Under the pieces are notes generated by a model. The model saw only the letters and a list, made by a program, of their open reading frames with translations. It searched no databases and had not been told where the DNA came from. This document shows positions 17,403 to 60,938 of a stretch of DNA of 64,000 bases, piece after piece (the first letter of the stretch is position 1; every line of letters begins with the position of its first letter). Source of the stretch: Carpediemonas membranifera BICM. Its lineage: Eukaryota; Protista; Fornicata. The stretch is taken from contig JAHDYR010000004.1 of assembly GCA_019828565.1 (NCBI GenBank), forward strand, positions 248,001 to 312,000. Reading direction: 5' to 3'. The translations under genes and the position numbers were made by a program.

Positions 17403-20400
17403 GCGTTGGTGCTCAGCATTCGGGGCATATTAGGGCTGAGTGCCACTCTTTCATCTTGACAAGCACGAACTTTTGAGACGTCACGATGTCGGACTGCTCA
17501 AAGTCGCTGACACGAAGACCATCCAAAACTCAGCGAGATGAATCAGTGACGATGCAGAAAGTTCGTTCCACGCCACCCATTTACGCAGCTGGTACGTTCC
17601 CCGCCACTTTGGCGCAGAGATGCAGCCCGCGGCGAGTTCAAGAGCACTAACACAGTGGATCTCAACAATGGTGCGTCCTCCCCGAGAATCTCACGCAGCA
17701 GCGAGTGCAGAGCAGTAGATCACATGATCAGAGACGCCACTACGCGCGTCTTCGCCCCAGAGGACAAGCTCCACCTCAATCCCATCGGATCCTCGCCCCT
17801 CACCGCTACAGACCTCAGCCGCGTCCTCAACCACCTCTCGACGCGGCCCAGAGAGTTCAGCATGAGGCTGACTGAGCCCGACCTCACTGTCACGATGAGG
17901 TATGGCAAGCTGGCCGCCGACAAGCCCGACAGCGCCATCGACGATCTGCTCGCTGCCTGGAATGCGAGGATGGCTGAGTGCATCCAGACGATGAAGGGTC
18001 ACACCGATGAGGTGTTCAGCGTCGCCTTCCTCCCTGACGGCACCATGGTCACTGGAGCACGCGATGGGACGACCAAGCTGTGGGACAAGCGCGGCGCCTG
18101 CAAGACGATGGAGCATGGTGGGACTGTTTGGTGCATCGCCGTCTCCCCGGACGGGTCGACCATCGCCTCGGGCGGTGATGACCACAAGATCAAGCTGTGG
18201 GACCAGACCGGCAGACTCGTCAAGACGCTCGAGGGGCACACCAATAATGTGTGGAGCCTCGCCTTCTCCCGAGACGGCAAGACGCTGGTGTCCGGATCAT
18301 ATGACAACACAGTCAGGACGTGGGACGTCGCCACCGGCGAGTGCAGGACGATGGAAGGGCACTCATTTGGGGTGCTCTCCGTCGCCATCTCCCCCGACGG
18401 CAAGACCATCGTCTCTGGATCATGGGATTATACCATCAAGGTGTGGATCGCTGAGTCGGGCAGACTCGAGCAGACTCTGGCGCGCTACAAGAATTCTGTC
18501 ACCACCGTCGCCATCTCCCCGGACGGCGCCCTGCTGGCCTCTGGGTCTTGCAACCACACCATCAGACTCTGGGACACCAGGACCTGGGAGTGCGTCACCG
18601 TCCTCAGGGGGCATGCGAGTTCTGTCCGCAGTGTCGCCTTCTCGCCCGACGGCAGGACCCTCGCCTCTGGTTCTGATGACAACACCATCAAGTTCTGGAG
18701 CATCGACAGCGGCGAGTGCTTCAAAACGCTCAGAGGTCACACAGATTGGGCGAACAGTGTCGTCTTCTCCCCGGACGGGTCGACCCTGCTCTCTGGGTCA
18801 AAGGACAAGACCGCCAAGCAGTGGTCCCTCGGTCGCTCTCCCGAGCTCACCGCCCTCGACCAGACCCTCGCCCAGCCTGTCCCGGCCGCGGCCATCGTCC
18901 GCCTCGAGGGCACCGTCGCCGACCTCACCCGCGTCCTCGACCACCTCTCGACGCGGCCCAGAGAGTTCAGCATGAGGCTGACTGAGCCCGACCTCACTGT
19001 CACGATGAGGTATGGCAAGCTGGCCGCCGACAAGCCCGACAGCGCCGTCGACGATCTGCTCGCTGCCTGGCATGCGAGAATGGCTGAGTGCATCCAGACG
19101 ATGAAGGGTCACACCGCTGACGTGAACAGCGTCGCCTTCCTCCCTGACGGCACCATGGTCACTGGGTCATGGGATGGGACGACCAAGCTGTGGGACAAGC
19201 GCGGCGCCTGCAAAATGTCGATGAAGCATGGTGAGAACGTTTGGTGCATCGCCGTCTCCCCGAACGGGTCGACTATCGCCTCGGGCGGGAGTGACCGCAA
19301 GATCAAGCTGTGGGACCAGACCGGCAGACTCGTCAAGACGCTCGAGGGGCACACCAATGATGTGAGAAGCCTCGCCTTCTCCCGAGACGGCAAGACGCTG
19401 GTGTCCGGATCCGATGACAAGACAGTCAGGACGTGGGACGTCGCCACCGGCGAGTGCAGGACGATGGAAGGGCACTCAAATTGGGTGCTCTCCGTCGCCG
19501 TCTCCCCCGACGGCAAGACCATCGTCTCTGGATCATGGGATTATACCATCAAGGTGTGGATCGCTGAGTCGGGCAGACTCGAGCAGACTCTGGAGGGCCA
19601 CACGAATTATCTCACCACCGTCGCCATTTCCCCGGACGGTGCTCTGCTGGCCTCTGGGTCTGGCGACCACACCATCAGACTCTGGGACACCAGAACCTGG
19701 GAGTGCGTCGCCATCCTCAGGGGGCACACGCACTTTGTCATCAGCGTCGCCTTCTCGCCCGACGGCAGGACCCTCGTCTCTGGGTCTGGTGACAACACCA
19801 TCAAGCTCTGGAGCATCGGCAGCGGCGAGTGCTTCGCGACGCTCAGGGGTCATGACAATATTGTGCGCTGTGTCGCCTTCTCCCCAGACGGGTCGACCCT
19901 GCTCTCTGGCTCTGACGACAAGACCGCTAAGCAGTGGCATATCAAGCACTCGCCAGAGATCGAGGAGGTCTGCGCCCAACCCACGCTCGGCGCCGACATC
20001 CGCCTGCCGTCCGACGACTCGCCCCTCAACATCCGCGACCTGGCGCGGGTCGTCATCCACATCCTCGCCACGGGCCTGCCCCGCTCCTTCGAGATGAGGC
20101 TGGCCCACCCCGAATACACCGTCTCTCTTGGTCCTACCGGTTTCACGACGAGCCAAGCCGCCGATGTTGAAGCCCTTCTCGAACTACTCAACCGCCACCT
20201 CGTGATGCAGAAACTGTTGGCTGAAACACGTGCTCTCAACGCTGTTGACGAAGCGCTTTACGTGGCCGCGGATCTGAGCGACGCCAAGCGCCTGCTGGCC
20301 GCCGCCGGCCCGCACGCGACGCAGCACGAGGCGCGAGTGCTCGCGCTGAGGACCGACCTCGCCCGCCTCCAGCCCGTGCAGGCGCTCGCCAAGGACCCGA

Positions 20401-22324
20401 TGCCCGCGCTCAGGGGCCGCGTCAAGGAGGCGCTGGAGAGGAGCGACGAGCTCCACGCGCACATCATCAGCGGCGACGTCGCCAAGATGCGCTCGAAGAC
20501 GCTGCTCAGAGACAAGCTGTTCGGCCCCGTCGTCCTCAACTGCCTCGACCGCGAGCGCCGGTCGCCGCTGCACAGCGCGTTCGTGCACGACCAGCCGCAG
20601 GCCTTCGCGGCGCTGCTCAAGGCCGGCTGCCTGCTCGACGACGCCTTCCCGGACGGCCACCCGCTGCTGGCCGCCGTCGCCAAGCCGCCGATGCTGGCCG
20701 CGATGCTGGCCGCGAGGGTTGACATCGACACCGTCAGCCGGAACACGACTGCGCTCGTGGTCGCCATCCAGGGCGGCCACTGGGACTCCGCGACGAAGCT
20801 GCTCGCCCGCGGCGCCGACCCCCTCCTCCCGCCGGTCGGCGTCAACGCGCTGCAGGCCGTCAAGGGCGTGGCCGACCCGCTCATGGCCGGCGTGATCCGG
20901 GCCGCCATCAACGACGCCCTGACGAAGAAGCTCAGCGACGCCATCACGCAGGGCGACACCGCTGCCGTGAAGCGGCTGCTCGCGGCGGGCGTGTCCGCGA
21001 ACGGCGTGGACGGCAAGATGCCGCCGCTCTTCGCTGCCGTCAAGGCGGGCAACTTCGACATCGTCAGCCTGCTGCTGAAGCACGGCGCCGACCGGGCCGC
21101 GACGTACAAGGGCAAGACAGCTGCCCAACGCGTGAAGAAGGGCAGCAACCTGCAGTTCTTGCTGCAGAGCCAAGCAGAACCCGCTCGTGTGAACTATGAC
21201 CTCAACGCGGACATCACGAAACCGGCGGGCAGCATCGCGTTCAGCCAGGCCGACCGCATCGGCGAGGGCGGCATGGCGGCCGTCTTCCGCGGCACGTACG
21301 GCGGCAGCGAGTGCGCCGTCAAGGTCGTCGCGCGGGCTGACCTGAACGCGATGCAGGCCGACCGACTCCAGAGCGAGATCTTCATCCACAAGCAGCTGCG
21401 CCACAGCAACGTCATCGCGCTCTACGCGCTCGAGCAGGACGACCGGGAGATCCGGCTCGCGCTCGAGCTCGCGTCGGGGTCGCTCTCGGCGCTGCTGCTC
21501 TCGAAGGCCGACCTGCCCTGGGACGCGCAGCTGAAGTTCGCGCGCGACATCGCGGCGGCCATGGCGTTCATCGTGGGCGAGGGCTACGAGCACAGGGACC
21601 TCAAGTCGCTCAACGTCCTCATCACTGGCTCCACAGCAAACCTTAGCGACTTCGGGCTGACCGCGGGGCTCGACGATCATGTGAATTTCGTCGAGGGCTC
21701 GTGGCCGTGGATGGCGCCCGAGCGCTTCGACGGCGTGGGCGGCGAGAAGGCCGACGTCTACGCCTTCGGCATCACGCTCTGGGAGATCGCCGCGCGCGAC
21801 ATCCCGTACCGCCAGGAGCGCCTCGGGCTCGACGCCATCCGCGCGCACGTGCGGGCTGGCTACCGGCCGATGATTCCCGCGGGCACGCCGGCGGCCGTGG
21901 GCGAGCTGATCCGCCGCTGCGTGGCGCCCGACCCGCGCGACCGCCCCACCTTCGCGGAGGTCGTCGCCGCGCTGCCCGACAGCGCCTCGACCGAGATGTA
22001 CACGGAGAGCTCCGTGCGCAACCACGAGGTCGGCACCTTCGCGAACGCCAGCGCCCCCGGCATGATGACGCTCGGCGAGGGCCAGCCCGCGATCATCGGA
22101 ACCGTCGGGCAGACGTTTGGTAACGCCAGCGCGCCCTGGATGACACTGTCCGAAGACGAGAGAGCAGCCGCGCTCGCCGCGATGGGCACGGTCACCGCGA
22201 CATACCGCACGAACGCGCCCAGCGCCCCGGGCCTGCGCACGCTGAACGACATGTACAGGTAAAGAGATTGGTTAGCTCAGCATTTACACCCGCCCCGCCC
22301 CATCGCCAGTCCTCCTCCGTCACA
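17403..22324 (+). repeat. Segmental duplication unit A (WD40-kinase gene with flanks)
   Basis: Begins gcgttggtgctcagcattcgggg, also found at 28047. Ends cctcctccgtcaca, also found at 31735 and inverted near 55010. Confidence 0.9.
17655..22262 (+). CDS. WD40-ankyrin-TKL kinase, paralogue A (two 7-bladed propellers, intact kinase)
   Basis: 14 GH...WD repeats in two cassettes. Ankyrin repeats (SPLHSA, TALVVA, PPLFAA). Kinase motifs IGEGGMA, CAVK, HRDLKSLN, DFG, GSWPWMAPE, DVYAFG. 5' end probably spliced. Confidence 0.9.
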   Translation: MDLNNGASSPRISRSSECRAVDHMIRDATTRVFAPEDKLHLNPIGSSPLTATDLSRVLNHLSTRPREFSMRLTEPDLTVTMRYGKLAADKPDSAIDDLLAAWNARMAECIQTMKGHTDEVFSVAFLPDGTMVTGARDGTTKLWDKRGACKTMEHGGTVWCIAVSPDGSTIASGGDDHKIKLWDQTGRLVKTLEGHTNNVWSLAFSRDGKTLVSGSYDNTVRTWDVATGECRTMEGHSFGVLSVAISPDGKTIVSGSWDYTIKVWIAESGRLEQTLARYKNSVTTVAISPDGALLASGSCNHTIRLWDTRTWECVTVLRGHASSVRSVAFSPDGRTLASGSDDNTIKFWSIDSGECFKTLRGHTDWANSVVFSPDGSTLLSGSKDKTAKQWSLGRSPELTALDQTLAQPVPAAAIVRLEGTVADLTRVLDHLSTRPREFSMRLTEPDLTVTMRYGKLAADKPDSAVDDLLAAWHARMAECIQTMKGHTADVNSVAFLPDGTMVTGSWDGTTKLWDKRGACKMSMKHGENVWCIAVSPNGSTIASGGSDRKIKLWDQTGRLVKTLEGHTNDVRSLAFSRDGKTLVSGSDDKTVRTWDVATGECRTMEGHSNWVLSVAVSPDGKTIVSGSWDYTIKVWIAESGRLEQTLEGHTNYLTTVAISPDGALLASGSGDHTIRLWDTRTWECVAILRGHTHFVISVAFSPDGRTLVSGSGDNTIKLWSIGSGECFATLRGHDNIVRCVAFSPDGSTLLSGSDDKTAKQWHIKHSPEIEEVCAQPTLGADIRLPSDDSPLNIRDLARVVIHILATGLPRSFEMRLAHPEYTVSLGPTGFTTSQAADVEALLELLNRHLVMQKLLAETRALNAVDEALYVAADLSDAKRLLAAAGPHATQHEARVLALRTDLARLQPVQALAKDPMPALRGRVKEALERSDELHAHIISGDVAKMRSKTLLRDKLFGPVVLNCLDRERRSPLHSAFVHDQPQAFAALLKAGCLLDDAFPDGHPLLAAVAKPPMLAAMLAARVDIDTVSRNTTALVVAIQGGHWDSATKLLARGADPLLPPVGVNALQAVKGVADPLMAGVIRAAINDALTKKLSDAITQGDTAAVKRLLAAGVSANGVDGKMPPLFAAVKAGNFDIVSLLLKHGADRAATYKGKTAAQRVKKGSNLQFLLQSQAEPARVNYDLNADITKPAGSIAFSQADRIGEGGMAAVFRGTYGGSECAVKVVARADLNAMQADRLQSEIFIHKQLRHSNVIALYALEQDDREIRLALELASGSLSALLLSKADLPWDAQLKFARDIAAAMAFIVGEGYEHRDLKSLNVLITGSTANLSDFGLTAGLDDHVNFVEGSWPWMAPERFDGVGGEKADVYAFGITLWEIAARDIPYRQERLGLDAIRAHVRAGYRPMIPAGTPAAVGELIRRCVAPDPRDRPTFAEVVAALPDSASTEMYTESSVRNHEVGTFANASAPGMMTLGEGQPAIIGTVGQTFGNASAPWMTLSEDERAAALAAMGTVTATYRTNAPSAPGLRTLNDMYR

Positions 22325-22860
22325 TGTCGGGCTCCTTGCATGTGTCCACTTGGCAGCAGGCAGGGTCCTATTTTCACCGGACGACGATCCGAGAGGAAGC
22401 GAACCAGGCGGAAGGGATTGAAATCGAACAAGCTCCATAGGCGCGTGTTGACCATTCATGACCTCCTCTGCGTATTCACGTTCTATTTAGCGGGCTTAGA
22501 TTAGTGAAGCATGCCCTTGCCCTGCTGACGAGGGGCCCGGTCGACTGTCGTGGGGCTGCTTGATCCTAGTCTGGCAGGAAGAGCAATCAATATCGCTCAT
22601 GTAGGTTGCGGCAAATACCACACAAGCACTCTTCTGATCACACTGGTTTCATATGTCGGTCCAGCAAGGGCATTTGACTCGATCGAGTCAAATTGATCCT
22701 GGTCCCCGTGATGCGAATGGCGCAGATCTTTTTCGTTGCTACAGCCCAGTGGACGTTGATTATGCCTCGTATAGCTTAAAAGACGTAAATACTGAATGTT
22801 ACATAATACCAGGCAGAGGATATGTACACGCATAACATCTGATCGCTTGCATATGAGCGA

Positions 22861-25800: not shown

Positions 25801-26109
25801 ATCCTCGTCGCCTCTGTGGTCGTTCTTATCGTTACCACAGCCATCCTCGTCCTCGGACAGCTCCCGTTCGTGCTCCATTGGATGGAAATGACCCCTACTC
25901 CTCTGGAGTTCAGGGTCGTCGTCTTTATATTCGCTGTGTTGTTCGTCGTGCTGTCTGTATCGTGGGAAGCGGTGACCATGCAGTATAGGCTGTATAGCAG
26001 GGTGAAGAGACTTGTCATGCCCCGCAAACACCTCAGGGCAACGAAGCAGCGCAGTAAGAGGATTCGGCTCATTGAGCGGCATCTGGAAAAGGTCTGGGAC
26101 GTTGATTGA
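22861..26109 (+). CDS. P5B-type ATPase (ATP13A/Ypk9 family)
   Basis: PFYLFQ, TGES, PPALP (P5B), DKTGTLT, KGSPE, TGDN, GDGANDC, FKYMALYS. 5' exons upstream of 22861 not resolved. Confidence 0.92.
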   Translation: MQIRMGFSLNLASLRHGRAESEIPRLREEYGTNSMDTHPPSLIRLLVTQVIHPFYLFQVVSFIFWAIDDYLVYACCILLISTFSAIVETFQTRRSQLRLYKMARQDGTCTVIRRQTGGISSVTIPVDDIVPGDLVRLYHGDNVPCDIVLTSGDVVVNEATLTGESTPTLKTPLIPDDEDEVLDPDDVSSRHVLYSGTTVVQTRTASGHAYGISIRTGFSTAKGKMIMSIMNPPEKGAFTFYRDSIRFLFVMCGLSVIGFLVSLYFFIKLHVSWKVIALQAGDIITIVVPPALPACMSVGTSFAMGFLRKKHIQCVAPQHINVAGKVKTVVFDKTGTLTEDHLALHGVIHSGDSAADQPTPLMRTALACCHTLATHDGGLIGDVLEQIMLHESEAVMRDGHQVEQDRSVREESSTSTDETSQDGFVPIRSSYSPGSPPESLQNHIPCGLKSAFATPYLSEAASPLGSTRKFPDLDMVMEPIDFIAESSVAAVLSFPGRTIPDIHVVRRFPFESSLQRMSVVVCRPVLTIFTKGSPERIISHCDPATIPSNLARVLEDEASAGRRVIAVAYKDLDTSLAPELDQVSRAELEADLTFVGLVSFVNPLREDTLECLGVLRRANIRTIMCTGDNPHTAVAVARHAGMITDEVLYVIPDDQTDGVLVVDSPDPAEATCAIDPSTLEFTAHSPTGLCYRHDSCSSKDSLLGASLPSVPYPYALVVTGSSFDRLLTMARKNDPPRSVDFVDLVCARVAVFARMTPENKADAVRMLQKRTGVLTAMIGDGANDCNSLKAADVGISLSSSEASIAAPFTSTAGSIRAVIDVLRHGRCALVTSFQAFKYMALYSMIQFISVISLYRINTDLSNGEFIYIDLFLILPLAFSMSRAKPVDMLVKRTPPAKLVGGTILSSLLGQILIVLVLQVVLQVYVVHRPWYVEISANPDTSNTYSMLVTTVFCLSATMYLSTAVSFSLGRPWRQGLHRNFILVASVVVLIVTTAILVLGQLPFVLHWMEMTPTPLEFRVVVFIFAVLFVVLSVSWEAVTMQYRLYSRVKRLVMPRKHLRATKQRSKRIRLIERHLEKVWDVD

Positions 26110-26685
26110 CACGACGTTAAATACTGCAGAAATGAATTTAAGGGAAGAGGTGTGTCAACGTGGTTGGGAGGTTGGTCAAGGTGAATCTCAGGATCGAGAA
26201 TTCGAGGATCTCAATGTCACTTTCGGTCAAGCCACAAACTGAGGCGACACGGCTTGTTCCCAGGACCTCTACTAGAAAAGGAGGGGTCGCGTCACAGCAC
26301 GGAGACTAAGGGAACTGACGAACCGACGCCTGGCGGCAGACGGTCAAGCATCCTAGATGGCGAGATAGCTTGCGCGTATCCACAGATTCTCTTAGATGGC
26401 AATGATATGCGGGTAAAATGGACGCCGGTGTAGGCGTTGGAAATGGACATATGATATAGCAGCAAGCAAGATTCATCGCACAATCCTTTATATGATTAGA
26501 ACTTGCCCACCGAGAACCTGTAATTGGTCTTTTCACAGCAATCAGTGCGCTATCATGATGTGGAATTCCTCCGCCAACTGGAATGTTTCCCATGTCGATA
26601 TGTTTGTGGTGTGTTTCTCCACTAATTGCATGAGATCTCGCTAAATACCTTAAACTATCCAGAAAACCTCATATTTACAGCCACC

Positions 26686-28046: not shown

Positions 28047-31000
28047 GCGTTGGTGCTCAGCATTCGGGGCATATTAGGGCTGAGTGCCACTCTTTCATCT
28101 TGACAAGCACGAACTTTTGAGACGTCACGATGTCGGACTGCTCAAAGTCGCTGACACGAAGACCATCCAAAACTCAGCGAGATGAATCAGTGACGATGCA
28201 GAAAGTTCGTTCCACGCCACCCATTTACGCAGCTGGTACGTTCCCCGCCACTTTGGCGCAGAGATGCAGCCCGCGGCGAGTTCAAGAGCGCTAACACAGT
28301 GGATCTTAACAATGGTGCGTCCTCCCCGAGAATCTCACGCAGCAGCGAGTGCAGAGCAGTCGATCACATGATCAGAGACGCCACGACGCGCATCTTCGCC
28401 CCAGAGGACAAGCTCCACATCAATCCCATCGGATCCTCGCCCCTCACCGCTACAGACCTCAGCCGCGTCCTCGACCACCTCTCGACATTGGACGTGCTGC
28501 CCAGAGAGTTCAGCATGAGGCTGACTGAGCCCGACATCACTGTCACGATGAGGTATGGCAAGCTGGCCGCCGACAAGCCCGACAGCGCCGTCGACGACCT
28601 GCTCGCTGCCTGGCATGCGAGGATGGCCGAGTGCATCCAGACGATGAAGGGTCACACCGATGCGGTGTTCAGCGTCGCCTTCCTCCCTGACGGCACCATG
28701 GTCACTGGGTCATGGGATGCGACGACCAAGCTGTGGGGCAAGCGCGGCGTGTGCACGACGACGATGGAGCATGGCGGGTCTGTTCGGTGCATCGCCGTCT
28801 CCCCGGACGGGTCGACCATCGCCTCGGGCGGGAGTGACTGCAAGATCAAGCTGTGGAGGCGCGGCAGACTCGTCAAGACGCTCGAGGGGCACACCAATAA
28901 TGTGAACAGCCTCGCCTTCTCCCGAGACGGCAAGACGCTGGTGTCCGGATCATTTGACAAGACAGTCAGGTCGTGGGACGTCGCCACCGGCGAGTGCAGG
29001 ACGATGGAAGAGCACTCAGATTGGGTGCGCTCCGTCGCCATCTCCCCCGATGGCAAGACCATCGTCTCTGGATCAAGAGATGACACGATCAAGGTGTGGG
29101 TCGCTGAGTCGGGCAGACTCGAGCAGACTCTGGAGGGCCACACTGATTCTGTCAACGCCGTCGCCATTTCCCCGGACGGCGCTCTGCTGGCCTCTGGGTC
29201 TTGCGACCACACCATCAGACTCTGGGACACCAGGACCTGGGAGTGCGTCACCGTCCTCAGGGGGCACGCGAGCTTTGTCAACAGCGTCGCCTTCTCGCCC
29301 GACGGCAGGACCCTCGCCTCTGGTTCTGATGACAACACCGTCAAGCTCTGGAGCATCGGCAGCGGCGAGTGCTTCGAGACGCTCAGGGGTCATGATGATT
29401 GGGTGAACAGCGTCGTCTTCTCCCCAGACGGGTCGACCCTGCTCTCTGGCTCTGACGACAAGACCGCCAAGCAGTGGCATATCAAGCACTCGCCAGAAAT
29501 CAAGGAGGTCTGCGCCCAACCCACGCTCGGCGCCGACATCCGCCTGCTGTCCGACGACTCGCCCCTCTACCTCGCCGACCTGGCGTGGGTCGTCATCCAC
29601 ATCCTCGCCACGGGCCTGCCCCGCTCCTTCGAGATGAGGCTGGCCCACCCCGAATGCACCGTCTCTCTTGGTCCTACCGGTTTCACGACGAGCCAAGCCG
29701 CCGATGTTGAAGCCCTTCTCGAACTACTCAACCGCCACCTCGTGATGCAGAAACTGTTGGCTGAAACACGTGCTCTCAACGCTGTTGACGAAGCGCTTTA
29801 CGTGGCCGCGGATCTGAGCGACGCCAAGCGCCTGCTGGCCGCCGCCGGCCCGCACGCGACGCAGCACGAGGCGCGAGTGCTCGCGCTGAGGACCGACCTC
29901 GCCCGCCTCCAGCCCGTGCAGGCGCTCGCCAAGGACCCGATGCCCGCGCTCAAGGGCCGCGTCAAGGAGGCGCTGGAGAGGAGCGACGAGCTCCACGCGC
30001 ACATCATCAGCGGCGACGTCGGCAAGATGCGCTCGAAGACGCTGCTCAGAGACAAGCTGTTCGGCCCCGTCGTCCTCAACTGCCTCGACCGCGAGCGCCG
30101 GTCGCCGCTGCACAGCGCGTTCGTGCACGACCAGCCGCAGGCCTTCGCGGCGCTGCTCAAGGCCGGCTGCCTGCTCGACGACGCCTTCCCGGACGGCCAC
30201 CCGCTGCTGGCCGCCGTCGCCAAGCCGCCGATGCTGGCCGCGATGCTGGCCGCGAGGGTTGACATCGACACCGTCAGCCGGAACACGACTGCGCTCGTGG
30301 TCGCCATCCAGGGCGGCCACTGGGACTCCGCGACGAAGCTGCTCGCCCGCGGCGCCGACCCCCTCCTCCCGCCGGTCGGCGTCAACGCGCTGCAGGCCGT
30401 CAAGGGCGTGGCCGACCCGCTCATGGCCGGCGTGATCCGGGCCGCCATCAACGACGCCCTGACGAAGCAGCTCAGCGACGCCATCATGCAGGGCGACACT
30501 GCTGCCGTGAAGCGGCTGCTCGCGGCGGGCGTGTCCGCGAACGGCGTGGAGGGCAAGATGCCGCCGCTCTTCGCTGCCGTCAAGGCGGGCAACTTCGACA
30601 TCGTCAGCCTGCTGCTGAAGCACGGCGCCGACCGGGCCGCGACGTACAAGGGCAAGACAGCTGCCCAACGCGTGAAGAAGGGCAGCAACCTGCAGTTCTT
30701 GCTGCAGAGCCAAGCAGAACCCGCTCGTGTGAACTATGACCTCAACGCGGACATCACGAAACCGGCGGGCAGCATCGCGTTCAGCCAGGCCGACCTCATC
30801 GGCGAGGGCGGCATGGCGGCCGTCTTCCGCGGCACGTACGGCGGCAGCGAGTGCGCCGTCAAGGTCGTCGCGCGGGCTGACCTGAACGCGATGCAGGCCG
30901 ACCGACTCCAGAGCGAGATCTTCATCCACAAGCAGCTGCGCCACAGCAACGTCATTGCGCTCTACGCGCTCGAGCAGGACAACCGAGAGATCCGGCTCGC

Positions 31001-31764
31001 GCTCGAGCTCGCGTCGGGGTCGCTCTCGGCGCTGCTGCTCTCGAAGGCCGACCTGCCCTGGGACGCGCGGCTGAAGTTCGCGCGCGACATCGCGGCGGCC
31101 ATGGCGTTCATCGTGGGCGAGGGCTACGAGCACAGGGACCTCAAGTCGCTCAACGTCCTCATCACTGGCTCCACAGCAAACCTTAGCGACTTCGGGCTGA
31201 CCGCGCGCGACATCCCGTACCGCCAGGAGCGCCTCGGGCTCGACGCCATCCGCGCGCACGTGCGGGCTGGCTACCGGCCGATGATCCCCGCGGGCACGCC
31301 GGCGGCCGTGGGCGAGCTGATCCGCCGCTGCGTGGCGCCCGACCCGCGCGACCGCCCCACCTTCGCGGAGGTCGTCGCCGCGCTGCCCGACAGCGCCTCG
31401 ACCGAGATGTACACGGAGAGCTCCGTGCGCAACCACGAGGTCGGCACCTTCGCGAACGCCAGCGCCCCCGGCATGATGACGCTCGGCGAGGGCCAGCCCG
31501 CGATCATCGGGACCGTCGGGCAGACGTTTGGTAACGCCAGCGCGCCCTGGATGACGCTGTCCGAAGACGAGAGAGCAGCCGCGCTCGCCGCGATGGGCAC
31601 GGTCACCGCGACATACCGCACGAACGCGCCCAGCGCCCCGGGCCTGCGCACGCTGAACGACATGTATAGGTAAAGAGATTGGTTAGCTCAGCATTTACAC
31701 CCGCCCCGACCCATCGCCAGTCCTCCTCCGTCACAGGCCCGGGCCGGACCTCCGTCGCCCGCCT
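28047..31764 (+). repeat. Segmental duplication unit B
   Basis: Direct copy of unit A. The 3' flank shares about 30 extra bp (ggcccgggccggacctccgtcgcccgcct) with unit C. Confidence 0.9.
28299..31673 (+). CDS. WD40-ankyrin-TKL kinase, paralogue B (one propeller; in-frame 43-aa kinase deletion)
   Basis: Near-identical to paralogue A outside the propeller. DFGLTA is fused to RDIPY, losing the activation loop, APE and DVYAFG. Confidence 0.88.
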   Translation: MDLNNGASSPRISRSSECRAVDHMIRDATTRIFAPEDKLHINPIGSSPLTATDLSRVLDHLSTLDVLPREFSMRLTEPDITVTMRYGKLAADKPDSAVDDLLAAWHARMAECIQTMKGHTDAVFSVAFLPDGTMVTGSWDATTKLWGKRGVCTTTMEHGGSVRCIAVSPDGSTIASGGSDCKIKLWRRGRLVKTLEGHTNNVNSLAFSRDGKTLVSGSFDKTVRSWDVATGECRTMEEHSDWVRSVAISPDGKTIVSGSRDDTIKVWVAESGRLEQTLEGHTDSVNAVAISPDGALLASGSCDHTIRLWDTRTWECVTVLRGHASFVNSVAFSPDGRTLASGSDDNTVKLWSIGSGECFETLRGHDDWVNSVVFSPDGSTLLSGSDDKTAKQWHIKHSPEIKEVCAQPTLGADIRLLSDDSPLYLADLAWVVIHILATGLPRSFEMRLAHPECTVSLGPTGFTTSQAADVEALLELLNRHLVMQKLLAETRALNAVDEALYVAADLSDAKRLLAAAGPHATQHEARVLALRTDLARLQPVQALAKDPMPALKGRVKEALERSDELHAHIISGDVGKMRSKTLLRDKLFGPVVLNCLDRERRSPLHSAFVHDQPQAFAALLKAGCLLDDAFPDGHPLLAAVAKPPMLAAMLAARVDIDTVSRNTTALVVAIQGGHWDSATKLLARGADPLLPPVGVNALQAVKGVADPLMAGVIRAAINDALTKQLSDAIMQGDTAAVKRLLAAGVSANGVEGKMPPLFAAVKAGNFDIVSLLLKHGADRAATYKGKTAAQRVKKGSNLQFLLQSQAEPARVNYDLNADITKPAGSIAFSQADLIGEGGMAAVFRGTYGGSECAVKVVARADLNAMQADRLQSEIFIHKQLRHSNVIALYALEQDNREIRLALELASGSLSALLLSKADLPWDARLKFARDIAAAMAFIVGEGYEHRDLKSLNVLITGSTANLSDFGLTARDIPYRQERLGLDAIRAHVRAGYRPMIPAGTPAAVGELIRRCVAPDPRDRPTFAEVVAALPDSASTEMYTESSVRNHEVGTFANASAPGMMTLGEGQPAIIGTVGQTFGNASAPWMTLSEDERAAALAAMGTVTATYRTNAPSAPGLRTLNDMYR

Positions 31765-44605: not shown

Positions 44606-44609
44606 TGCA

Positions 44610-51819: not shown

Positions 51820-52046
51820 GACCCGTAAATGTAAATTGAGTGATGTCTGATCGGCTCGCGTTACAGCAGCCACCAATCCATCGTTAAGCCATGCCCCAGC
51901 CTCATTGAGTCGACTGGTTGATTTGATCGTGTCTGATTGAGAGAGAGTCAACGCAGGTCAAGCGACTTTTGATGGAGTCTCGAGATATGCAACGAAAGAC
52001 GGGAGCAGAACCGAGAATGGAGATTTTAAACACGTGCAATCGCCCC

Positions 52047-52843
52047 GGCGCATGTTGCATGAATCTCCGCTGCCGACGATCCTGGATCCTGCGATATCCT
52101 CCCAAGATTTGACTTTCAACGACTGTCAACGAATGGAACAACCATGAAGGCCGCCATTCTTTTCCTCCTCGTCTGCGCCTGCCTCGCTACGAAGGGCCTC
52201 GACTTCTCTGTGTTCCAAGGAACTCCCTCAGTTACCGATTTGAGGTGTCTGAAGAGCAACGGCTTCGAGTTCGCCATCATTCAGGCCCAGCGCTCCAACG
52301 GCGGCTTTAACGACCACATCGGTCCTGCAGTTCGCAACGCGCAGGCCGCGGGCTTCAAGTACATCGATTTCTACTTCTTCCCCTCGAAGGCTCACTCAGC
52401 CTCCTCCCAGGTCCGCAACACCGTCGCCAAGCTCAAGGCCGCCGGGCTGTACCACTCGCAGCACCAGATGTGGATCGACATCGAGAACCACGCCCTATTC
52501 TTCTCCAGCTGCTCCGAGAACGTCAAGTTCATCAAGGAGATCGTCAAGGAGCTCGAGACCTACTGGCCCGGCAAGGTGGGCATGTACACCTCGGAGGCCC
52601 AGTGGAGCCCCATCGCGTGCAACAGCAAGGATTTCTCTCACATGCAGCTGTGGTGGCCCCGTTACGACGGCGTCGGGAGCCTCACCCACAACTGGCGCAG
52701 CTTCGGCGGCTGGTCCAGGCCCGCTATCAAGCAGTACCGCGGCACCACGTCGATCTGCGGCACCCAGATCGACGAGGACGTCTACTAAGTCCAGTAAATG
52801 CTGACTGCAGTTGAGTCGGGTGATTATACGGAATGACAGCGCA
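52047..52843 (+). repeat. ~797-bp inverted duplication, left arm
   Basis: Reverse complement of 54003-54799; encoded proteins are identical. Confidence 0.92.
52144..52788 (+). CDS. Secreted GH25 lysozyme (muramidase), copy 1
   Basis: Signal peptide; GLDFSVFQG, WIDIE (DxE), GMYTS..QW, LWWPRYD, FGGW..P.IKQY, IDED. Confidence 0.92.
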   Translation: MKAAILFLLVCACLATKGLDFSVFQGTPSVTDLRCLKSNGFEFAIIQAQRSNGGFNDHIGPAVRNAQAAGFKYIDFYFFPSKAHSASSQVRNTVAKLKAAGLYHSQHQMWIDIENHALFFSSCSENVKFIKEIVKELETYWPGKVGMYTSEAQWSPIACNSKDFSHMQLWWPRYDGVGSLTHNWRSFGGWSRPAIKQYRGTTSICGTQIDEDVY

Positions 52844-53110
52844 GGTGCAGCACTATACCACCAGGCTACATGCCCACATTCCCCTGCAAACATGTGGCAC
52901 TGCCCTGACTCTCTTCAATCGTCAGGGTGCATGGGGCCGGGGCAGGTGGGCTATCTTACCTCAAACAAATGCTGGTCCCCGTGGCATGGAGCCGATGAGA
53001 TCCTTATCGGCAGCCGCGACTGGAGACTGCCGCTATGAATCTGATAATTTGTGCTGAGATATGATGAAGATCTCTGCAGGCAACTGACGAAGACAGCCAA
53101 CCAACTCCAA

Positions 53111-53896
53111 ATGACGATTGTTGTGGAATATAGAATCCCTATGCCCTTTACTATGGAGGAATACGCCGTTGGCCAGTTGTACATGATCGCTCAAGCTTCC
53201 ATGGCGGAATCTAAGCCAGGAGAAGGTGTTTCGTTCGTCAAGAACGAACCTATTGATCCTAATGACAGTCAAAAGGGCTGGTATACGCGCAAGATCTTTC
53301 ATGTGGGGAACTCGCCGCAAATCCCGAAGTTTATTCGTGCCATCATCAAGAATGCCGTGAACGTCGTCGAGAACTCGTGGAACAGCTGGCCCCACTATCG
53401 CACAGAGTACCACAGCCCCCTGTTCGGCAGCAACTTCAAGTACACCATCGAATCCTACCATGTGGCGGATAAGGCTGAGTCCGACGCCAACGACCTGCCG
53501 ATCCAGATTAAGGACAAGTACAAGAAGAAGAAGAAAGTAGTGGTTCTGGACATAGCCACTAGTGATCCCGCTGCAATGGCGGACTGCAACCCGCTCACAC
53601 ACTCTTGCGAGAAGAGTGGCATGCCTCCGCTGACCGAGGACTGGCTTGAGACCCAGCCGGCCGATCGGGTGATGACTGCTTACAAGGTGGTCACAGTGCA
53701 CTGTAACATATTCGGAGTCGGTCACAGAATCGAGCAATTTGTTCAAAGGCTGACAGCCGAACTTTTCGTCCAGTACCATCGTAAGATTTTCGTCTGGCAC
53801 GACTCGTGGTTCGATAAGACGATGGAGGATATCCATGAGCTGGAGAGCCTGGCGCAACAGAAGCTGGCAGTCAGCCAGTCCATGGAGGTTGTTTGA
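53111..53896 (+). CDS. Phosphatidylinositol transfer protein (START-like PITP)
   Basis: VEYRIPMPFTMEEYAVGQLYMIA, GEGV..VKNEP, G.YTRKIFH, E.SWN.WP..RTEY, MTAYKVV, HR.IF.W.D.W...TMEDI. Confidence 0.93.
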   Translation: MTIVVEYRIPMPFTMEEYAVGQLYMIAQASMAESKPGEGVSFVKNEPIDPNDSQKGWYTRKIFHVGNSPQIPKFIRAIIKNAVNVVENSWNSWPHYRTEYHSPLFGSNFKYTIESYHVADKAESDANDLPIQIKDKYKKKKKVVVLDIATSDPAAMADCNPLTHSCEKSGMPPLTEDWLETQPADRVMTAYKVVTVHCNIFGVGHRIEQFVQRLTAELFVQYHRKIFVWHDSWFDKTMEDIHELESLAQQKLAVSQSMEVV

Positions 53897-54002
53897 TTTC
53901 CCAATTTAAAAAATGATCAATGACGGCAGATGAATGAGCGTGGTTGCGCTGGGGCTGGGGCCTTACTCAGCTTTCATTGGGCCATGTAGCCGAGGCTGGC
54001 AT

Positions 54003-54799
54003 TGCGCTGTCATTCCGTATAATCACCCGACTCAACTGCAGTCAGCATTTACTGGACTTAGTAGACGTCCTCGTCGATCTGGGTGCCGCAGATCGACGTG
54101 GTGCCGCGGTACTGCTTGATAGCGGGCCTGGACCAGCCGCCGAAGCTGCGCCAGTTGTGGGTGAGGCTCCCGACGCCGTCGTAACGGGGCCACCACAGCT
54201 GCATGTGAGAGAAATCCTTGCTGTTGCACGCGATGGGGCTCCACTGGGCCTCCGAGGTGTACATGCCCACCTTGCCGGGCCAGTAGGTCTCGAGCTCCTT
54301 GACGATCTCCTTGATGAACTTGACGTTCTCGGAGCAGCTGGAGAAGAATAGGGCGTGGTTCTCGATGTCGATCCACATCTGGTGCTGCGAGTGGTACAGC
54401 CCGGCGGCCTTGAGCTTGGCGACGGTGTTGCGGACCTGGGAGGAGGCTGAGTGAGCCTTCGAGGGGAAGAAGTAGAAATCGATGTACTTGAAGCCCGCGG
54501 CCTGCGCGTTGCGAACTGCAGGACCGATGTGGTCGTTAAAGCCGCCGTTGGAGCGCTGGGCCTGAATGATGGCGAACTCGAAGCCGTTGCTCTTCAGACA
54601 CCTCAAATCGGTAACTGAGGGAGTTCCTTGGAACACAGAGAAGTCGAGGCCCTTCGTAGCGAGGCAGGCGCAGACGAGGAGGAAAAGAATGGCGGCCTTC
54701 ATGGTTGTTCCATTCGTTGACAGTCGTTGAAAGTCAAATCTTGGGAGGATATCGCAGGATCCAGGATCGTCGGCAGCGGAGATTCACGCAGCATGCGCC
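54003..54799 (-). repeat. ~797-bp inverted duplication, right arm
   Basis: Reverse complement of 52047-52843. Confidence 0.92.
54058..54702 (-). CDS. Secreted GH25 lysozyme, copy 2
   Basis: Protein identical to 52144-52788. Confidence 0.92.
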   Translation of the reverse strand: MKAAILFLLVCACLATKGLDFSVFQGTPSVTDLRCLKSNGFEFAIIQAQRSNGGFNDHIGPAVRNAQAAGFKYIDFYFFPSKAHSASSQVRNTVAKLKAAGLYHSQHQMWIDIENHALFFSSCSENVKFIKEIVKELETYWPGKVGMYTSEAQWSPIACNSKDFSHMQLWWPRYDGVGSLTHNWRSFGGWSRPAIKQYRGTTSICGTQIDEDVY

Positions 54800-55071
54800 A
54801 GGTCCTCGTTATGAAGGGTGTTCATGTCACGCCGTCATTCTATTGTTCCAAGTCAGGACAACGATGATTAGTTTCTCGGCCCGTGGTGTCACATCTGGAT
54901 GTTCGTAGCATGCTCACCACAGTCGAAAAACGCACTGATCAGGGAAATGATGGGAATTTTGAACGGGTTGGGCCGCGTTCAGGCGGGCGACGGAGGTCCG
55001 GCCCGGGCCTGTGACGGAGGAGGACTGGCGATGGGGCGGGGCGGGTGTAAATGCTGAGCTAACCAATCTCT

Positions 55072-58000
55072 TTACCTATACATGTCGTTCAGCGTGCGCA
55101 GGCCCGGGGCGCTGGGCGCGTTCGTGCGGTATGTCGCGGTGACCGTGCCCATCGCGGCGAGCGCGGCTGCTCTCTCGTCTTCGGACAGCGTCATCCAGGG
55201 CGCGCTGGCGTTACCAAACGTCTGCCCGACGGTCCCGATGATCGCGGGCTGGCCCTCGCCGAGCGTCATCATGCCGGGGGCGCTGGCGTTCGCGAAGGTG
55301 CCGACCTCGTGGTTGCGCACGGAGCTCTCCGTGTACATCTCGGTCGAGACGCTGTCGGGCAGCGCGGCGACGACTTCCGCGAAGGTGGGGCGGTCGCGCG
55401 GGTCGGGCGCCACGCAGCGGCGGATCAGCTCGCCCACGGCCGCCGGCGTGCCCACGGGAATCATCGGCCGGTAGCCAGCCCGCACGTGCGCGCGGATGGC
55501 GTCGAGCCCGAGGCGCTCCTGGCGGTACGGGATGTCGCGCGCGGCGATCTCCCAGAGCGTGATGCCGAAGGCGTAGACGTCGGCCTTCTCGCCGCCCACG
55601 CCGTCGAAGCGCTCGGGCGCCATCCACGGCCACGAGCCCTCGACGAAATTCACATGATCGTCGAGCCCCGCGGTCAGCCCGAAGTCGCTAAGGTTTGCTG
55701 TGGAGCCAGTGATGAGGACGTTGAGCGACTTGAGGTCCCTGTGCTCGTAGCCCTCGCCCACGATGAACGCCATGGCCGCCGCGATGTCGCGCGCGAACTT
55801 CAGCCGCGCGTCCCAGGGCAGGTCGGCCTTCGAGAGCAGCAGCGCAGAGAGCGACCCCGACGCGAGCTCGAGCGCGAGCCGGATCTCCCGGTCGTCCTGC
55901 TCGAGCGCGTAGAGCGCGATGACGTTGTTGTGGCGCAGCTGCTTGTGGATGAAGATCTCACTCTGGAGTCGGTCGGCCTGCATCGCGTTCAGGTCAGCCC
56001 GCGCGACGACCTTGACGGCGCACTCGCTGCCGCCGTACGTGCCGCGGAAGACGGCCGCCATGCCGCCCTCGCCGATGAGGTCGGCCTGGCTGAACGCGAT
56101 GCTGCCCGCCGGTTTCGTGATGTCCGCGTTGAGGTCATAGTTCACACGAGCGGGTTCTGCTTGGCTCTGCAGCAAGAACTGCAGGTTGCTGCCCTTCTTC
56201 ACGCGTTGGGCAGCTGTCTTGCCCTTGTACGTCGCGGCCCGGTCGGCGCCGTGCTTCAGCAGCAGGCTGACGATGTCGAAGTTGCCCGCCTTGACGGCAG
56301 CGAAGAGCGGCGGCATCTTGCCCTCCACGCCGTTCGCGGACACGCCCGCCACGAGCAGCCGCTTCACGGCAGCGGTGTCGCCCTGCGTGATGGCGTCGCT
56401 GAGCTTCTTCGTCAGGGCGTCGTTGATGGCGGCCAGGATCACGCCGGCCATATGCGGGTCGGCCACGCCCTTGACGGCCTGCAGCGCGTTGACGCCGACC
56501 GGCGGGAGGAGGGGTCGGCGCCGCGGGCGAGCAGCTTCGTCGCGGAGTCCCAGTGGCCGCCCTGGATGGCGACCACGAGCGCAGTCGTGTTCCGGCTGAC
56601 GGTGTCGATGTCAACCCTCGCGGCCAGCATCGCGGCCAGCATCGGCGGCTTGGCGACGGCGGCCAGCAGCGGGTGGCCGTCCGGGAAGGCGTCGTCGAGC
56701 AGGCAGCCGGCCTTGAGCAGCGCCGCGAAGGCCTGCGGCTGGTCGTGCACGAACGCGCTGTGCAGCGGCGACCGGCGCTCGCGGTCGAGGCAGTTGAGGA
56801 CGACGGGGCTGAACAGCTTGTCTCTGAGCAGCTTCCTCGAGCGCATCTTGCCGACGTCGCCGCTGATGATGTGCGCGTGGAGCTCGTCGCTCCTCTCCAG
56901 CGCCTCCTTGACGCGGCCCCTGAGCGCGGGCATCGGGTCCTTGGCGAGCGCCTGCACGGGCTGGAGGCGGGCGAGGCCGGTCCTCAGCGCGAGCACTCGC
57001 GCCTCGTGCTGCGTCGCGTGCGGGCCGGCGGCGGCCAGCAGGACATTTGCCTTGTCCAACAGGGCCTTGGCACTCTCGAGGTTCGCAAGGGAGAATATCG
57101 CATCGTCTGCATCGGACAGCATGCGCTCCGCATCGTGCACTTTGACAAGTCTCGCGACCACGGGCAGGGCGTTAACCTGCTTGAGGACGGCGTTGACCAC
57201 AGAGTTGGCGTGCGTTGATGTGAACCCCCGCGGCCCGAGAGAAACCGTTGTTTCAGGGCGGTTGACCTTCATTTGGAAAACGCGAGGCAATTTGTCTCCG
57301 GCAGTCGCGTGGTCGAGCACGCGACGCAGGTCACGAGCGTCAGTCGGGACGTAACTGGGGAACATGTAGCGGAGCTCCGTCTTGCTATTCACCGGCCGGC
57401 TCAGGCGCCCGTCCAATATCGCGTCCAGACAGATTCGGTTGAGCGGGTCAATGATATCATGAACCGCCGATTTGGGCACTGACGGGCAGAAAAACCCGTC
57501 ATTGTTGAGCTGAATCGTGCACTGTGGCGACCTCAGCTGCATCGTGAAGGAGCGAGGCAGGACGTGGCATGACAAGATGTGGTCGACGACGCGGGAGAGG
57601 TCACCGAGGGTGATTTTCAAGATCAGCGCACTTGCCTTGTCGAAGCCGAAATCAACGTCGCTTTCAGCCGTGACGGGCTGGGCGCAGAACTCGTTGATCT
57701 TGTGACGGAAGATAGCCTGGTTAAACTTATACATGATGGCGGTCACCGGACCACCGGTGGCTTCCCCGCGGGCGATGAGGAACTTTTCTGCGTTCAGTTT
57801 GACGACCATCTTGGGCTTGGACAGCTTCATCTCGAACGAACGAGGGGCAATCCTCCGGCCGGCCAGACGGGACAGAGCGGCACGGAAATCCTCGGCCGTG
57901 AGCGGCGCGTGTTCGCCCAGGCTGATCTCATCGTCGGTCGAGATGGCGTCGAGGTGGGCGGTCAGGAAGCTGAAGCCGCTGAGCACCTCGGCCACGGCCT

Positions 58001-60938
58001 GGTTCGGTGGGGCGACCTCGAAGCCGGTCGGGCCGAGGGTGACGGTGGCGGCTGGGTCGTCGAGCTGGACCTCGAATGAGCGGGGCGCGATACCTGCCAG
58101 TTCAATGTGGCTCAGCACCTGCTGGAGCGAGGGCAGGTCGGCGTGGACGAGGCGAACGGCTGCGTCGGGCGTAACCGGCTGGGCACAAGCAGCGCTGACA
58201 GAAGCGGCGAGACGGATACGGTTGAGCGGCTCAACGGCTTGGACAACGTCAGCAGAGAAGCCCGCAGGCGACGACAGGAGGAAGCCGTCCTGGTCGGTGT
58301 GGACCACGCCGGCGGGGTCAGCCAGCCGCATCTCGAAGGAACGGGGGGCGACCTTCCGTTCAGTCAGTATGGCGAGGGCCACGTTGAGGTCGCCAATCGT
58401 GAGCGGCGCGTGCTCGCCCAGGCTGATCTCATCGGCGGTCGAGATGGCGTCGAGGTAGGCGGTCAGGAAGCTGAAGCCGCTGACAACAAAATCGACAACA
58501 TCGCTGGGTGGGGCGACCTCGAAGCCGGTCGGGCCGAGGGTGACGGTGGCGGCTGGGTCGTCGAGCTGGACCTCGAATGAGCGGGGCGCGATACCTGCCA
58601 GTTCAATGTGGCTCAGCACCTGCTGGAGCGAGGGCAGGTCGGCGTGGACGAGGCGAACGGCTGCGTCGGGCGTAACCGGCTGGGCACAAGCAGCGCTGAC
58701 AGAAGCGGCGAGACGGATACGGTTGAGCGGCTCAACGGCTTGGACAACGTCAGCAGAGAAGCCCGCAGGCGACGACAGGAGGAAGCCGTCCTGGTCGGTG
58801 TGGACCACGCCGGCGGGGTCAGCCAGCCGCATCTCGAAGGAACGGGGGGCGACCTTCCGTTCAGTCAGTATGGCGAGGGCCACGTTGAGGTCGCCAATCG
58901 TGAGCGGCGCGTGCTCGCCCAGGCTGATCTCATCGGCGGTCGAGATGGCGTCGAGGTAGGCGGTCAGGAAGCTGAAGCCGCTGACAACAAAATCGACAAC
59001 ATCGCTGGGTGGGGCGACCTCGAAGCCGGTCGGGCCGAGGGTGACGGTGGCGGCTGGGTCGTCGAGCTGGACCTCGAATGAGCGGGGCGCGATACCAGTG
59101 GCTTTGACGTGCGCGAGGAGCTTCTTCAGCGTGAATAGATCGGCGTGGGTGACTCTGATCGCGGTCTTGGCCGTGACGGCTTGGGCGCAGACTCTAGCAA
59201 CTGCTGCGGTGAGACAAGAACGGTTGAGCGGCAGTAGGGCGGCGGCGATCTTGTCATCTGCGGGCGAGACTGAGATGAAGCCGTTAGGGTCCATGACAGC
59301 GGTGGACGCGGCAGGCAGGGCGATCCCGGCGTCGGCGCAGGCCTGGGCGACCAGTTTGTTGAGGCGACTCTGGTTGAGCGGGGCGAGTAGGCCGCGAACC
59401 TCGGAGTTTGTGGGGGTCTCAAAGAAGAGGCCATCATACATGCTGACAGCGACAGGTGGGTGGGCCATCCTCATCTCGAAGGAGCGGGGCAGGCCCGTGG
59501 CGAGGATGTGGATGACGACCCACGCCAGGTCGGCGAGGTAGAGGGGCGAGTCGTCGGACGGCAGGCGGATGTCGGCGCCGAGCGTGGGTTGGGCGCAGAC
59601 CTCCTCGATCTCTGGCGAGTGCTTGATATGCCACTGCTTAGCGGTCTTGTCGTCAGAGCCAGAGAGCAGGGTCGACCCGTCTGGGGAGAAGACGACGCTG
59701 TTCACCCAATCATCATGACCCCTGAGCGTCTCGAAGCACTCGCCGCTGCCGATGCTCCAGAGCTTGACGGTGTTGTCATCAGAACCAGAGGCGAGGGTCC
59801 TGCCGTCGGGCGAGAAGGCGACGCTGCTGACAAAGCTCGCGTGCCCCCTGAGGACGGCGACGCACTCCCAGGTCCTGGTGTCCCAGAGTCTGATGGTCTT
59901 GTCCCACGACCCAGAGGCCAGCAGAGCGCCGTCCGGGGAGATGGCGACGGCGTTGACAGAATCAGTGTGGCCCTCCAGAGTCTGCTCGAGTCTGCCCGAC
60001 TCAGCGTCCCACACCTTGATCGTCATGTCCCTTGATCCAGAGACGATGGTCTTGCCGTCGGGGGAGACGGCGACGGAGAGCACCCAATTTGAGTGCCCTT
60101 CCATCGTCCTGTACTCGCCGGTGGCGACGTCCCACGACCTGACTGTCTTGTCAAATGATCCGGACACCAGCGTCTTGCCGTCTCGGGAGAAGGCGAGGCT
60201 GTTCACATTATTGGTGTGCCCCTCGAGCGTCTTGACGAGTCTGCCGCGCTTGCTCCACAGCTTGATCTTGTGGTTATCACCGCTCGATGCGATGGTTGAC
60301 CCGTCCGGGGAGACGGCGATGCACCGAACCTTCCCACCATGTTCCATCGACTCCTTGCACACGCCGCGCTTGTCCCACAGCTTGGTCGTCCCATCCCATG
60401 ACCCAGTGACCATGGTGCCGTCAGGGAGGAAGGCGACGCTGATCACGCCACTGGTGTGACCCTTCATCGTCTGGATGCACTCAGCCATCCTCGCATTCCA
60501 GGCAGCGAGCAGGTCGTCGACGGCGCTGTCGGGCTTGTCGGCGGCCAGCTTGCCATACCTCATCGTGACAGTGAGGTCGGGCTCAGTCAGCCTCATGCTG
60601 AATGCTGCGGGCACCACCGAGAAGAGATTGAGGACGCGGGCGAGGTCTGCGACGGTGAGGGGCGAGGATCCGATGGGATTGATGTGGAGCTTGTCCTCTG
60701 GGGCGAAGACGCGCGTAGTGGCGTCTCTGATCATGTGATCTACTGCTCTGCACTCGCTGCTGCGTGAGATTCTCGGGGAGGACGCACCATTGTTGAGATC
60801 CACTGTGTTAGTGCTCTTGAACTCGCCGCGGGCTGCATCTCTGCGCCAAAATGGCGGGGAACGTACCAGCTGTGTAAATTTGCCGTCAAAAGCGTACTTT
60901 GTGCACCGTCTCTGCACTGATCGCGCTGTTTCGGACAT
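55072..60938 (-). pseudogene. WD40-ankyrin-TKL kinase, paralogue C (one propeller, expanded PRSF array, 1-nt frameshift; pseudogene or sequencing error)
   Basis: ORFs 56439-61037 and 55072-56466 join if one C is restored in the C4 run (G4 at 56511-56514); paralogues A and B have C5. Kinase motifs intact. Confidence 0.75.
58007..59096. repeat. 501-bp (167-codon) near-perfect intragenic tandem repeat, ~2.2 units
   Basis: ggtggggcgacctcgaagccggtcgggccg recurs with 501-bp spacing; the protein block IAPRSFEVQL...VAPRSFEMRL is repeated. Confidence 0.88.

Follow-up and report, generated by a model that had tools for sequence, protein, structure and literature searches.

Diversifying WD40 propellers joined to an ankyrin-TKL kinase module in Carpediemonas membranifera: candidate sensors of foreign proteins

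Variable top faces of WD40 beta-propellers are already known from non-self receptors, as are bacterial kinase-WD40 fusions and the diversifying repeat receptors of brown algae, which are not NOD-like receptors (NLRs). Ankyrin repeats adjoin a kinase of the tyrosine kinase-like (TKL) group in RNase L, RIPK4 and the ILK/Raf-like ankyrin kinases. In the fungal proteins HET-D and HET-E, the selected codons are numbers 7, 9, 25 and 27 of the WD40 repeat, which flank a conserved Val and Asp and lie on the top face of the propeller (PMC1805685). The repeats of fungal NLRs show high internal conservation (PMC4986451). Here we analyzed a stretch of 64,000 nucleotides of the protist Carpediemonas membranifera (contig JAHDYR010000004.1, positions 248,001 to 312,000; hereafter the window) that contains three paralogous genes, A, B and C, encoding WD40 propellers followed by ankyrin repeats and a TKL kinase. 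The propellers of this family diversify at the positions known from HET-D and HET-E.

The domain order in the family is leader-(L-propeller)n-Ln-ankyrin-kinase, where L is a domain of ~80 amino acids with the motif PRSFxMRL that is found on both sides of every propeller. Pfam detected 14 WD40 repeats in A and 7 each in B and C, and ankyrin repeats and the PK_Tyr_Ser-Thr profile in all three. An earlier note on this DNA had proposed four 7-bladed propellers (A1, A2, B and C) in three ankyrin-TKL kinase paralogues, and both Pfam and a structural model of A1 agree with it. The model, obtained with AlphaFold from single-sequence input, is a confident propeller of seven four-stranded blades with GH...WD motifs, matching designed WRAP propellers and the natural WD40 domain 5yzv at a root-mean-square deviation (rmsd) of ~1.1. 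Among the named relatives of the propellers, cyanobacterial STAND-WD40 and fungal NACHT-WD40/HET-E proteins predominate (~40-55% identical, with many scoring alike); the proteins nearest to the window genes are labelled Carpediemonas membranifera. The kinase was classified as TKL by Pfam profile and motifs: the kinase parts of A and C combine the profile with an HRDLKxxN loop and GT/SxxWMAPE, while B is without the WMAPE segment. No Roc or COR match was obtained in the C-terminal half of A, where L domains and ankyrin repeats occupy the space. Neither a signal peptide nor a transmembrane helix was detected (highest hydropathy 1.5-1.6 in A and C, using a simple scale and a 19-residue window), consistent with the cytosolic location that had been suggested.

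The ankyrin-kinase-tail parts of A, B and C are 98.9-99.2% identical in DNA and the scaffolds of the four window propellers 93-97%, confirming their reported near-identity. All 23 blade motifs quoted in the earlier note were present in the genes to which it had assigned them. Its view that changes cluster at top-face residues is confirmed, with one correction: 13-25 of the 25-47 pairwise amino acid differences among the four propellers (about half) fall in the 35 of 282 codons that represent top-face positions, and the other half lie outside the top face. The proposed gene starts at 17655 and 28299 were incorrect, each being the last base of an intron.

The genome of C. membranifera (24,237,836 bases, 69 contigs) was published as a haploid assembly of 24.2 Mb in 69 contigs from Nanopore plus Illumina sequencing (PMC8516963). 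Because it is haploid, the propeller variants compared here are paralogues. We collected 44 propellers from C5:1-200,000 and the window, a range that excludes C5:200-248 kb, everything past 312 kb on C5 and all remaining contigs; they reduced to 23 non-redundant sequences with 88-97% identity. Codons 7, 9, 25 and 27 of the HET-D/E repeat (PMC1805685) were chosen as candidate sites before the selection tests. Using our own implementation of site models with naive empirical Bayes on the 23 propellers, we obtained likelihood-ratio test (LRT) values of 327 (M1a/M2a) and 321 (M7/M8), with an omega (dN/dS) of 5.7-5.9 on 11% of codons. Twenty-three sites reached a posterior >0.95, 16 of them at HET-E positions 7, 9, 25 and 27 and 5 more at position 6, placing 21 of the 23 in top-face loops. 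Selection thus affected 16 of the 28 a-priori HET-E positions compared to 7 of 254 others (Fisher p = 1e-13). In the A1 model, positions 6 and 7 lie in the d-a loop, position 9 starts strand a, and positions 25 and 27 lie in the b-c loop; by established WD40 geometry, the selected positions would make up the top face. The top-face signature is different in each of the 23 propellers. In contrast, the bottom-face loops are conserved (proportion of nonsynonymous differences, pN, 0.027), and no positive selection was detected in the ankyrin and kinase parts (LRT 0 and 1.3). Judging from the sequence, the predicted catalytic motifs are intact in A and most paralogues, and the kinase is under purifying selection.

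Exchange between propellers was extensive. Site incompatibility increased from 0.31 within 30 nucleotides to a plateau of 0.62 beyond 60 nucleotides (p<0.001), a rise completed within 60-120 nucleotides, with or without the hot codons, and the nearest relative differs from blade to blade. Exchange runs between equivalent blades of different propellers. Thus, short gene-conversion tracts shuffle variants between propellers. Since strong recombination inflates tree-based tests, we added pairwise, tree-free and simulation checks. In pairwise counts, pN was 0.36 at the 28 HET-E codons, compared to a proportion of synonymous differences (pS) of 0.08 elsewhere, in 253 of 253 pairs. A tree-free composite codon likelihood, which accounts for codon bias and for the raised synonymous divergence near hot codons, gave an omega of 7.4 relative to the local synonymous rate (bootstrap 3.6-18), and of 0.1-0.3 for the rest. 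When recombination was mimicked by switching to a fresh genealogy every 30-60 nucleotides, ten neutral simulations produced LRT values of 12-75, as opposed to 327 observed. We conclude that diversifying selection on the propeller binding face is supported, as the earlier note had anticipated, and that its assignment of the variable sites to the HET-D/HET-E top-face class is supported as well. None of the outcomes that it had named beforehand as refuting its proposal was observed: dN/dS was not <= 1, the selected sites were neither scattered nor, by their loop positions in the predicted structure, buried, and the genes do not encode a conserved housekeeping kinase.

Two further observations concern sequence exchange. 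GC content at third codon positions (GC3) is 0.95-0.97 in the kinase (window 21198-21989) and 0.74-0.77 in adjacent genes, a difference that GC-biased gene conversion among the many family copies would predict. Moreover, the same in-frame TAG replaces Gln at the end of blade 7 in eight propellers from two sequence clusters (loci L001-L020; C5:7626, 24520, 90015, 112822, 125143, 142118, 154389 and 171246), indicating that a single stop was spread by conversion and duplication. It would yield propeller-only proteins or separate the sensor from the effector. Read-through of TAG in an alternative code is unsupported, since TAG terminates 19 of 88 long open reading frames (ORFs).

The genome contains more than 20 close kinase copies and more than 50 propeller matches, mostly on contig C5, supporting a multi-copy, lineage-specific family and not the single-copy housekeeping kinase that would have spoken against the earlier proposal. 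The unit of duplication is a cassette of ~1.11 kb consisting of an L domain and one whole 7-bladed propeller, present one to five times per gene. Direct coupling of the propellers to an ankyrin-kinase output, as previously suggested, is seen in the domain order of A, B and C but is not specific to this output. The cassette also leads into a triple CbxX-type AAA+ ATPase, into a second type of kinase (alone or with IBR) and into a kinase-RhoGEF, so that at least three further outputs carry it. Note that KAG9396649.1, named HET-E in GenBank, is an L-propeller protein with a kinase and no NTPase match. Ankyrin-TKL kinases without propellers occur in the same genome (P0272, KAG9394232.1; 45% identical, with a small GTPase in place of the propellers before the ankyrin-TKL module) and in assembly GCA_002919055.1 (P0273; 43% identical in the kinase). 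The presence of propeller-free kinases in two assemblies, the latter of them fragmentary, suggests that a kinase of older origin later acquired the cassette.

Five genes on C5 (L003, L008, L010, L013 and L016, at ~19.5-29, 68-74, 86-96, 121-131 and 151-160 kb) combine two to five cassettes with the triple CbxX-type AAA+ ATPase, which is 99-100% identical in four of the five.

At least 150 copies of the L domain are distributed over at least 14 contigs of the genome. In a search of 1.84 billion representatives, all full-length matches that were looked up belonged to C. membranifera; the few matches outside Carpediemonas covered only 28-48 profile positions in repetitive proteins and were set aside. 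Searches with Pfam, Atlas features, Foldseek, VIA and Atlas structure returned nothing significant for L. The predicted fold is beta-alpha-beta-beta-beta-alpha (predicted local distance difference test, pLDDT, 85). Based on these comparisons, L appears to be a Carpediemonas-only domain without a known fold. We considered a double-stranded RNA-binding domain/HPF (ribosome hibernation factor) fold, given that the secondary-structure elements follow one another in the same way and that HPF chains ranked near the top of the comparison, and rejected it at Foldseek E>=0.5, TM ~0.2-0.3 and a best Z of 4.5. Three proteins, P0239 (KAG9393451.1), P0243 and P0248, consist of several L domains (11 in P0239) with no further recognized domain.

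Are these proteins NLRs? No NACHT or NB-ARC domain was found in the A, B and C proteins, and the genome contained no match to PF05729 or PF00931 at E<=0.001 with positive controls, although very divergent STAND domains could escape such a search; the earlier note had likewise reported none. The NLR/STAND order of effector, NTPase and repeats is absent from the family. Sequence exchange among family members is shared with HNWD proteins, whereas their >85% internal repeat conservation is not seen, blade-to-blade DNA identity within a propeller being 52-75% and the conservation lying between propellers (88-97%). The family would work in the manner of an HNWD sensor, yet it is not an NLR.

The family is transcribed and spliced. 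Genes A and B have three short introns with micro-exons of 3 and 15 nucleotides at their 5' ends, and RNA contigs from two runs connect 28204 to 28342 through the letters of both micro-exons. Note that the two runs have near-equal depths and may be a single data set, with a depth close to zero beyond gene B. In most paralogues, splicing yields a leader with CxxC-x4-CxxC; A carries one in-frame stop here (a TGA immediately ahead of the motif), B two and C none. All three window genes carry lesions, and A alone has an intact kinase in frame; the kinase output attributed to the three genes is therefore retained in A, but B and C cannot encode an intact kinase as assembled. In B, 129 nucleotides (43 codons) are deleted in frame at ~31205, and a short microhomology marks the junction. 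The activation loop, APE and subdomain IX are lost, and the product is predicted to be kinase-dead. In C, one nucleotide is missing from a C-run at ~56513 before the kinase. Since the assembly combines Nanopore and Illumina data, indels of one base within repeats could be artefacts, and this deletion may be real or a Nanopore error. Dense single-base indels also occur at loci L012-L014 (C5 112-131 kb) in copies near-identical to intact ones, probably reflecting poorly polished Nanopore sequence. The features of the three genes are listed in Table 1.

Table 1. Positions of the features of genes A, B and C in the window
Feature	Position	Strand	Description
Gene A 5' introns (28, 64, 28 nt)	17561..17698	+	Micro-exons of 3 nt (17589-17591) and 15 nt (17656-17670)
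Gene A main exon	17699..22262	+	Met at 17724, open thereafter; L-A1-L-A2-L-helical linker-ankyrin-TKL kinase-tail
L ('PRSF') domain 5' of A1	17790..17993	+	Other copies in A at 18903-19103 and 20016-20225
WD40 propeller A1, 7 blades	17979..18824	+	Pfam; model pLDDT >90 across the propeller
WD40 propeller A2, 7 blades	19089..19937	+	Pfam
Ankyrin-repeat region of A	20505..21182	+	
TKL-type kinase of A	21198..21989	+	VAVK-like Lys, HRDLKSLN, DFG and WMAPE all intact
Gene B 5' introns and micro-exons	28205..28342	+	Micro-exons 28233-28235 and 28300-28314; splice joint seen in RNA contigs
Gene B main exon	28343..31673	+	L-propeller B (28632-29477)-L-linker-ankyrin-kinase; 129-nt deletion at ~31205
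Gene C	55072..60938	-	ATG at 60938; intact Cys4 leader, L, propeller C, L array, linker, ankyrin, kinase
Propeller C	59631-60479	-	7 blades
L tandem array of C	57138..59552	-	Nine full and one partial; 501-bp two-domain unit ~3 times
Gene C 1-nt deletion in C-run	56511..56516	-	Cuts the kinase off from the other domains; genuine or an artefact of assembly
TKL kinase of C	55345-56136	-	

Other features of the window include two identical inverted arms of 800 bp (52044-54802) adjoining gene C, each with a GH25 lysozyme gene, which flank a gene at 53051-53896 that is PITP-like by eye. An ORF of 1385 amino acids (38499-42656) contains two FAD-binding/oxidoreductase halves and DUF707, with an internal duplication of 92-99%. 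Finally, 682-6138 encodes a putative membrane protein of 1818 amino acids; inspection by eye suggests several transmembrane helices, a Cys-rich stretch and domains, present more than once, that resemble periplasmic binding proteins.

We favour the interpretation, with a probability of roughly 60%, that the family is a lineage-specific repertoire of cytosolic sensor-kinases for foreign or invader-altered host proteins, which starts a defence response. Since the binding face diversifies at the positions of fungal non-self receptors, the propeller-kinases probably sense foreign proteins, and from this we infer an immune role. The L-propeller cassette duplicates and is stacked one to five times before the output module. 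The conversion tracts described above keep the scaffold uniform and reshuffle the top-face residues, and selection favours new top-face combinations. Each top face would then bind a foreign protein or an invader-altered host protein, as suggested by the positions concerned and by HET-D/E. Binding may cluster the receptors or lift an ankyrin-mediated inhibition, whereupon the TKL kinase would trans-autophosphorylate and trigger a defence or cell-death response. The L domains could serve as spacers or as assembly surfaces replacing the NTPase switch, and the broken, kinase-dead copies may reflect birth-and-death turnover while still acting as conversion donors.

Several points weigh against this interpretation. 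Near the hot codons, synonymous divergence is higher than elsewhere (0.145 vs 0.054), as expected of long-standing balanced variants but equally of a mutation rate that is elevated locally. Omega is inflated both by multi-nucleotide changes within codons and by recombination, and the simulation covers recombination only. The data come from a single haploid strain, so that between-strain polymorphism is invisible. Many family copies, including the window genes, are broken as assembled, and the RNA contigs give no expression levels and cross-map among paralogues.

The propellers might be variable substrate adaptors that recruit foreign or selfish-element proteins, to be modified or dismantled by the attached kinase, AAA+ or IBR-type ligase. 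Fusion of the same cassette to triple CbxX-type AAA+ and kinase+IBR proteins would fit this idea, and the WD40 top face is the usual substrate-binding surface of E3 adaptors. We nevertheless consider it unlikely, as the ankyrin-TKL kinase and the RhoGEF fusion resemble signalling outputs and none of the parts scanned was reported to carry an F-box, BTB or SOCS adaptor motif. In allorecognition, or discrimination of mates or kin, the propellers would recognize a self protein that is polymorphic, in the way that HET-D/E recognize HET-C, and would trigger incompatibility after cell fusion. The selected positions match those of HET-D/E, and C. membranifera is predicted to be haploid with the gamete-fusion proteins Hap2 and Gex1 (PMC8516963). 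Yet the diversity is spread over dozens of paralogues of a single haploid genome, with several unrelated outputs attached, and a broad surveillance repertoire would account for this better than a few het loci; with no co-varying partner identified, this explanation seems distinctly improbable.

Neutral expansion of a duplication-prone cluster, with unusual recombination-based replication, drifting loops and conversion mimicking selection, would account for the many broken copies, the four near-identical segmental copies and the high GC3 of the kinase (0.95-0.97 vs 0.75 in neighbours), which is expected from biased conversion. Recombination alone also yields significant LRTs, but the observed value is more than four times the highest simulated one, and the omega of the top face is well above 1 without a tree and relative to the local synonymous rate. 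Furthermore, the bottom loops are conserved although equally exposed, and nearly every hot-site residue is encoded by a single codon, though the residues are 2-3 nucleotides apart. We therefore disfavour neutral expansion as very improbable. As a bacterivore that lives with a bacterial consortium, the organism might instead use the propellers to detect its prey, its nutrients or bacterial partners, and not enemies. The ligands would have to reach the cytosol, given the lack of a signal peptide or transmembrane segment, and rapid diversification is more typical of conflict; of the explanations considered, we regard this one as the least probable.

The reading as sensor-kinases of foreign proteins can be extended, more tentatively and with doubt prevailing, to a system of innate immune receptors that work without an NTPase and originated in the Carpediemonas lineage. 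Such a system would combine HET-E-like propellers, an L domain doing the assembly job of NACHT/NB-ARC, and interchangeable outputs (ankyrin-TKL, the second kinase with or without IBR or RhoGEF, and the triple AAA+). How free-living protists detect invaders is largely unknown, and the family supplies named genes and named residues for this question. With 23 or more distinct binding faces on a common scaffold, it offers a natural panel for direct ligand fishing. It displays the HET-D/E selection pattern in a eukaryotic lineage remote from the fungi and in proteins lacking the NTPase that is considered central to such receptors, and adds a domain (L) with no known relative. Within an incomplete coverage of the literature, we found no publication that describes the family, its L domain or a propeller-ankyrin-TKL order without an NTPase.

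How does the family compare with known systems? It shares with the ankyrin-kinases (RNase L, RIPK4, ILK/Raf-like) the placement of ankyrin repeats beside a TKL-group kinase, with no orthology found at the sequence level; the closest ankyrin-kinases are the propeller-free P0272 and P0273. Like the brown-algal LRR-ROCO candidate receptors (PMC11378527) and the Dictyostelium Roco kinases, it represents non-NLR repeat proteins outside animals and plants with binding-face diversification and a candidate immune role. In contrast to LRR-ROCO, however, the window genes have WD40 instead of leucine-rich repeats (LRR) and no ROC-COR, and diversify by gene conversion rather than exon shuffling. In bacteria, repetitive WD40 proteins combine with STAND, caspase or Ser/Thr kinase domains (PkwA, cyanobacterial kinase-WD40; PMC5587647). 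They likewise include NTPase-free kinase-WD40 fusions with variable hotspot sites, and among natural structures the propeller is matched best by the WD40 domain of Thermomonospora curvata PkwA (5yzv, rmsd 1.1). Unlike these, the Carpediemonas kinase is a eukaryotic TKL kinase placed C-terminally behind ankyrin and L domains, in proteins with an intron-containing leader and a repertoire at the level of paralogues. As in the HNWD/NWD NLRs of Podospora anserina (HET-D, HET-E), a multigene family carries a WD40 sensor selected at positions 7, 9, 25 and 27 (PMC1805685, PMC4986451), with sequence exchange among members and pseudogene members. The Carpediemonas family differs in being without a NACHT or HET domain and in having its propellers N-terminal to the effector, and whereas a single repeat of 42 amino acids is duplicated in Podospora, the unit in Carpediemonas is a whole propeller with its L domain.

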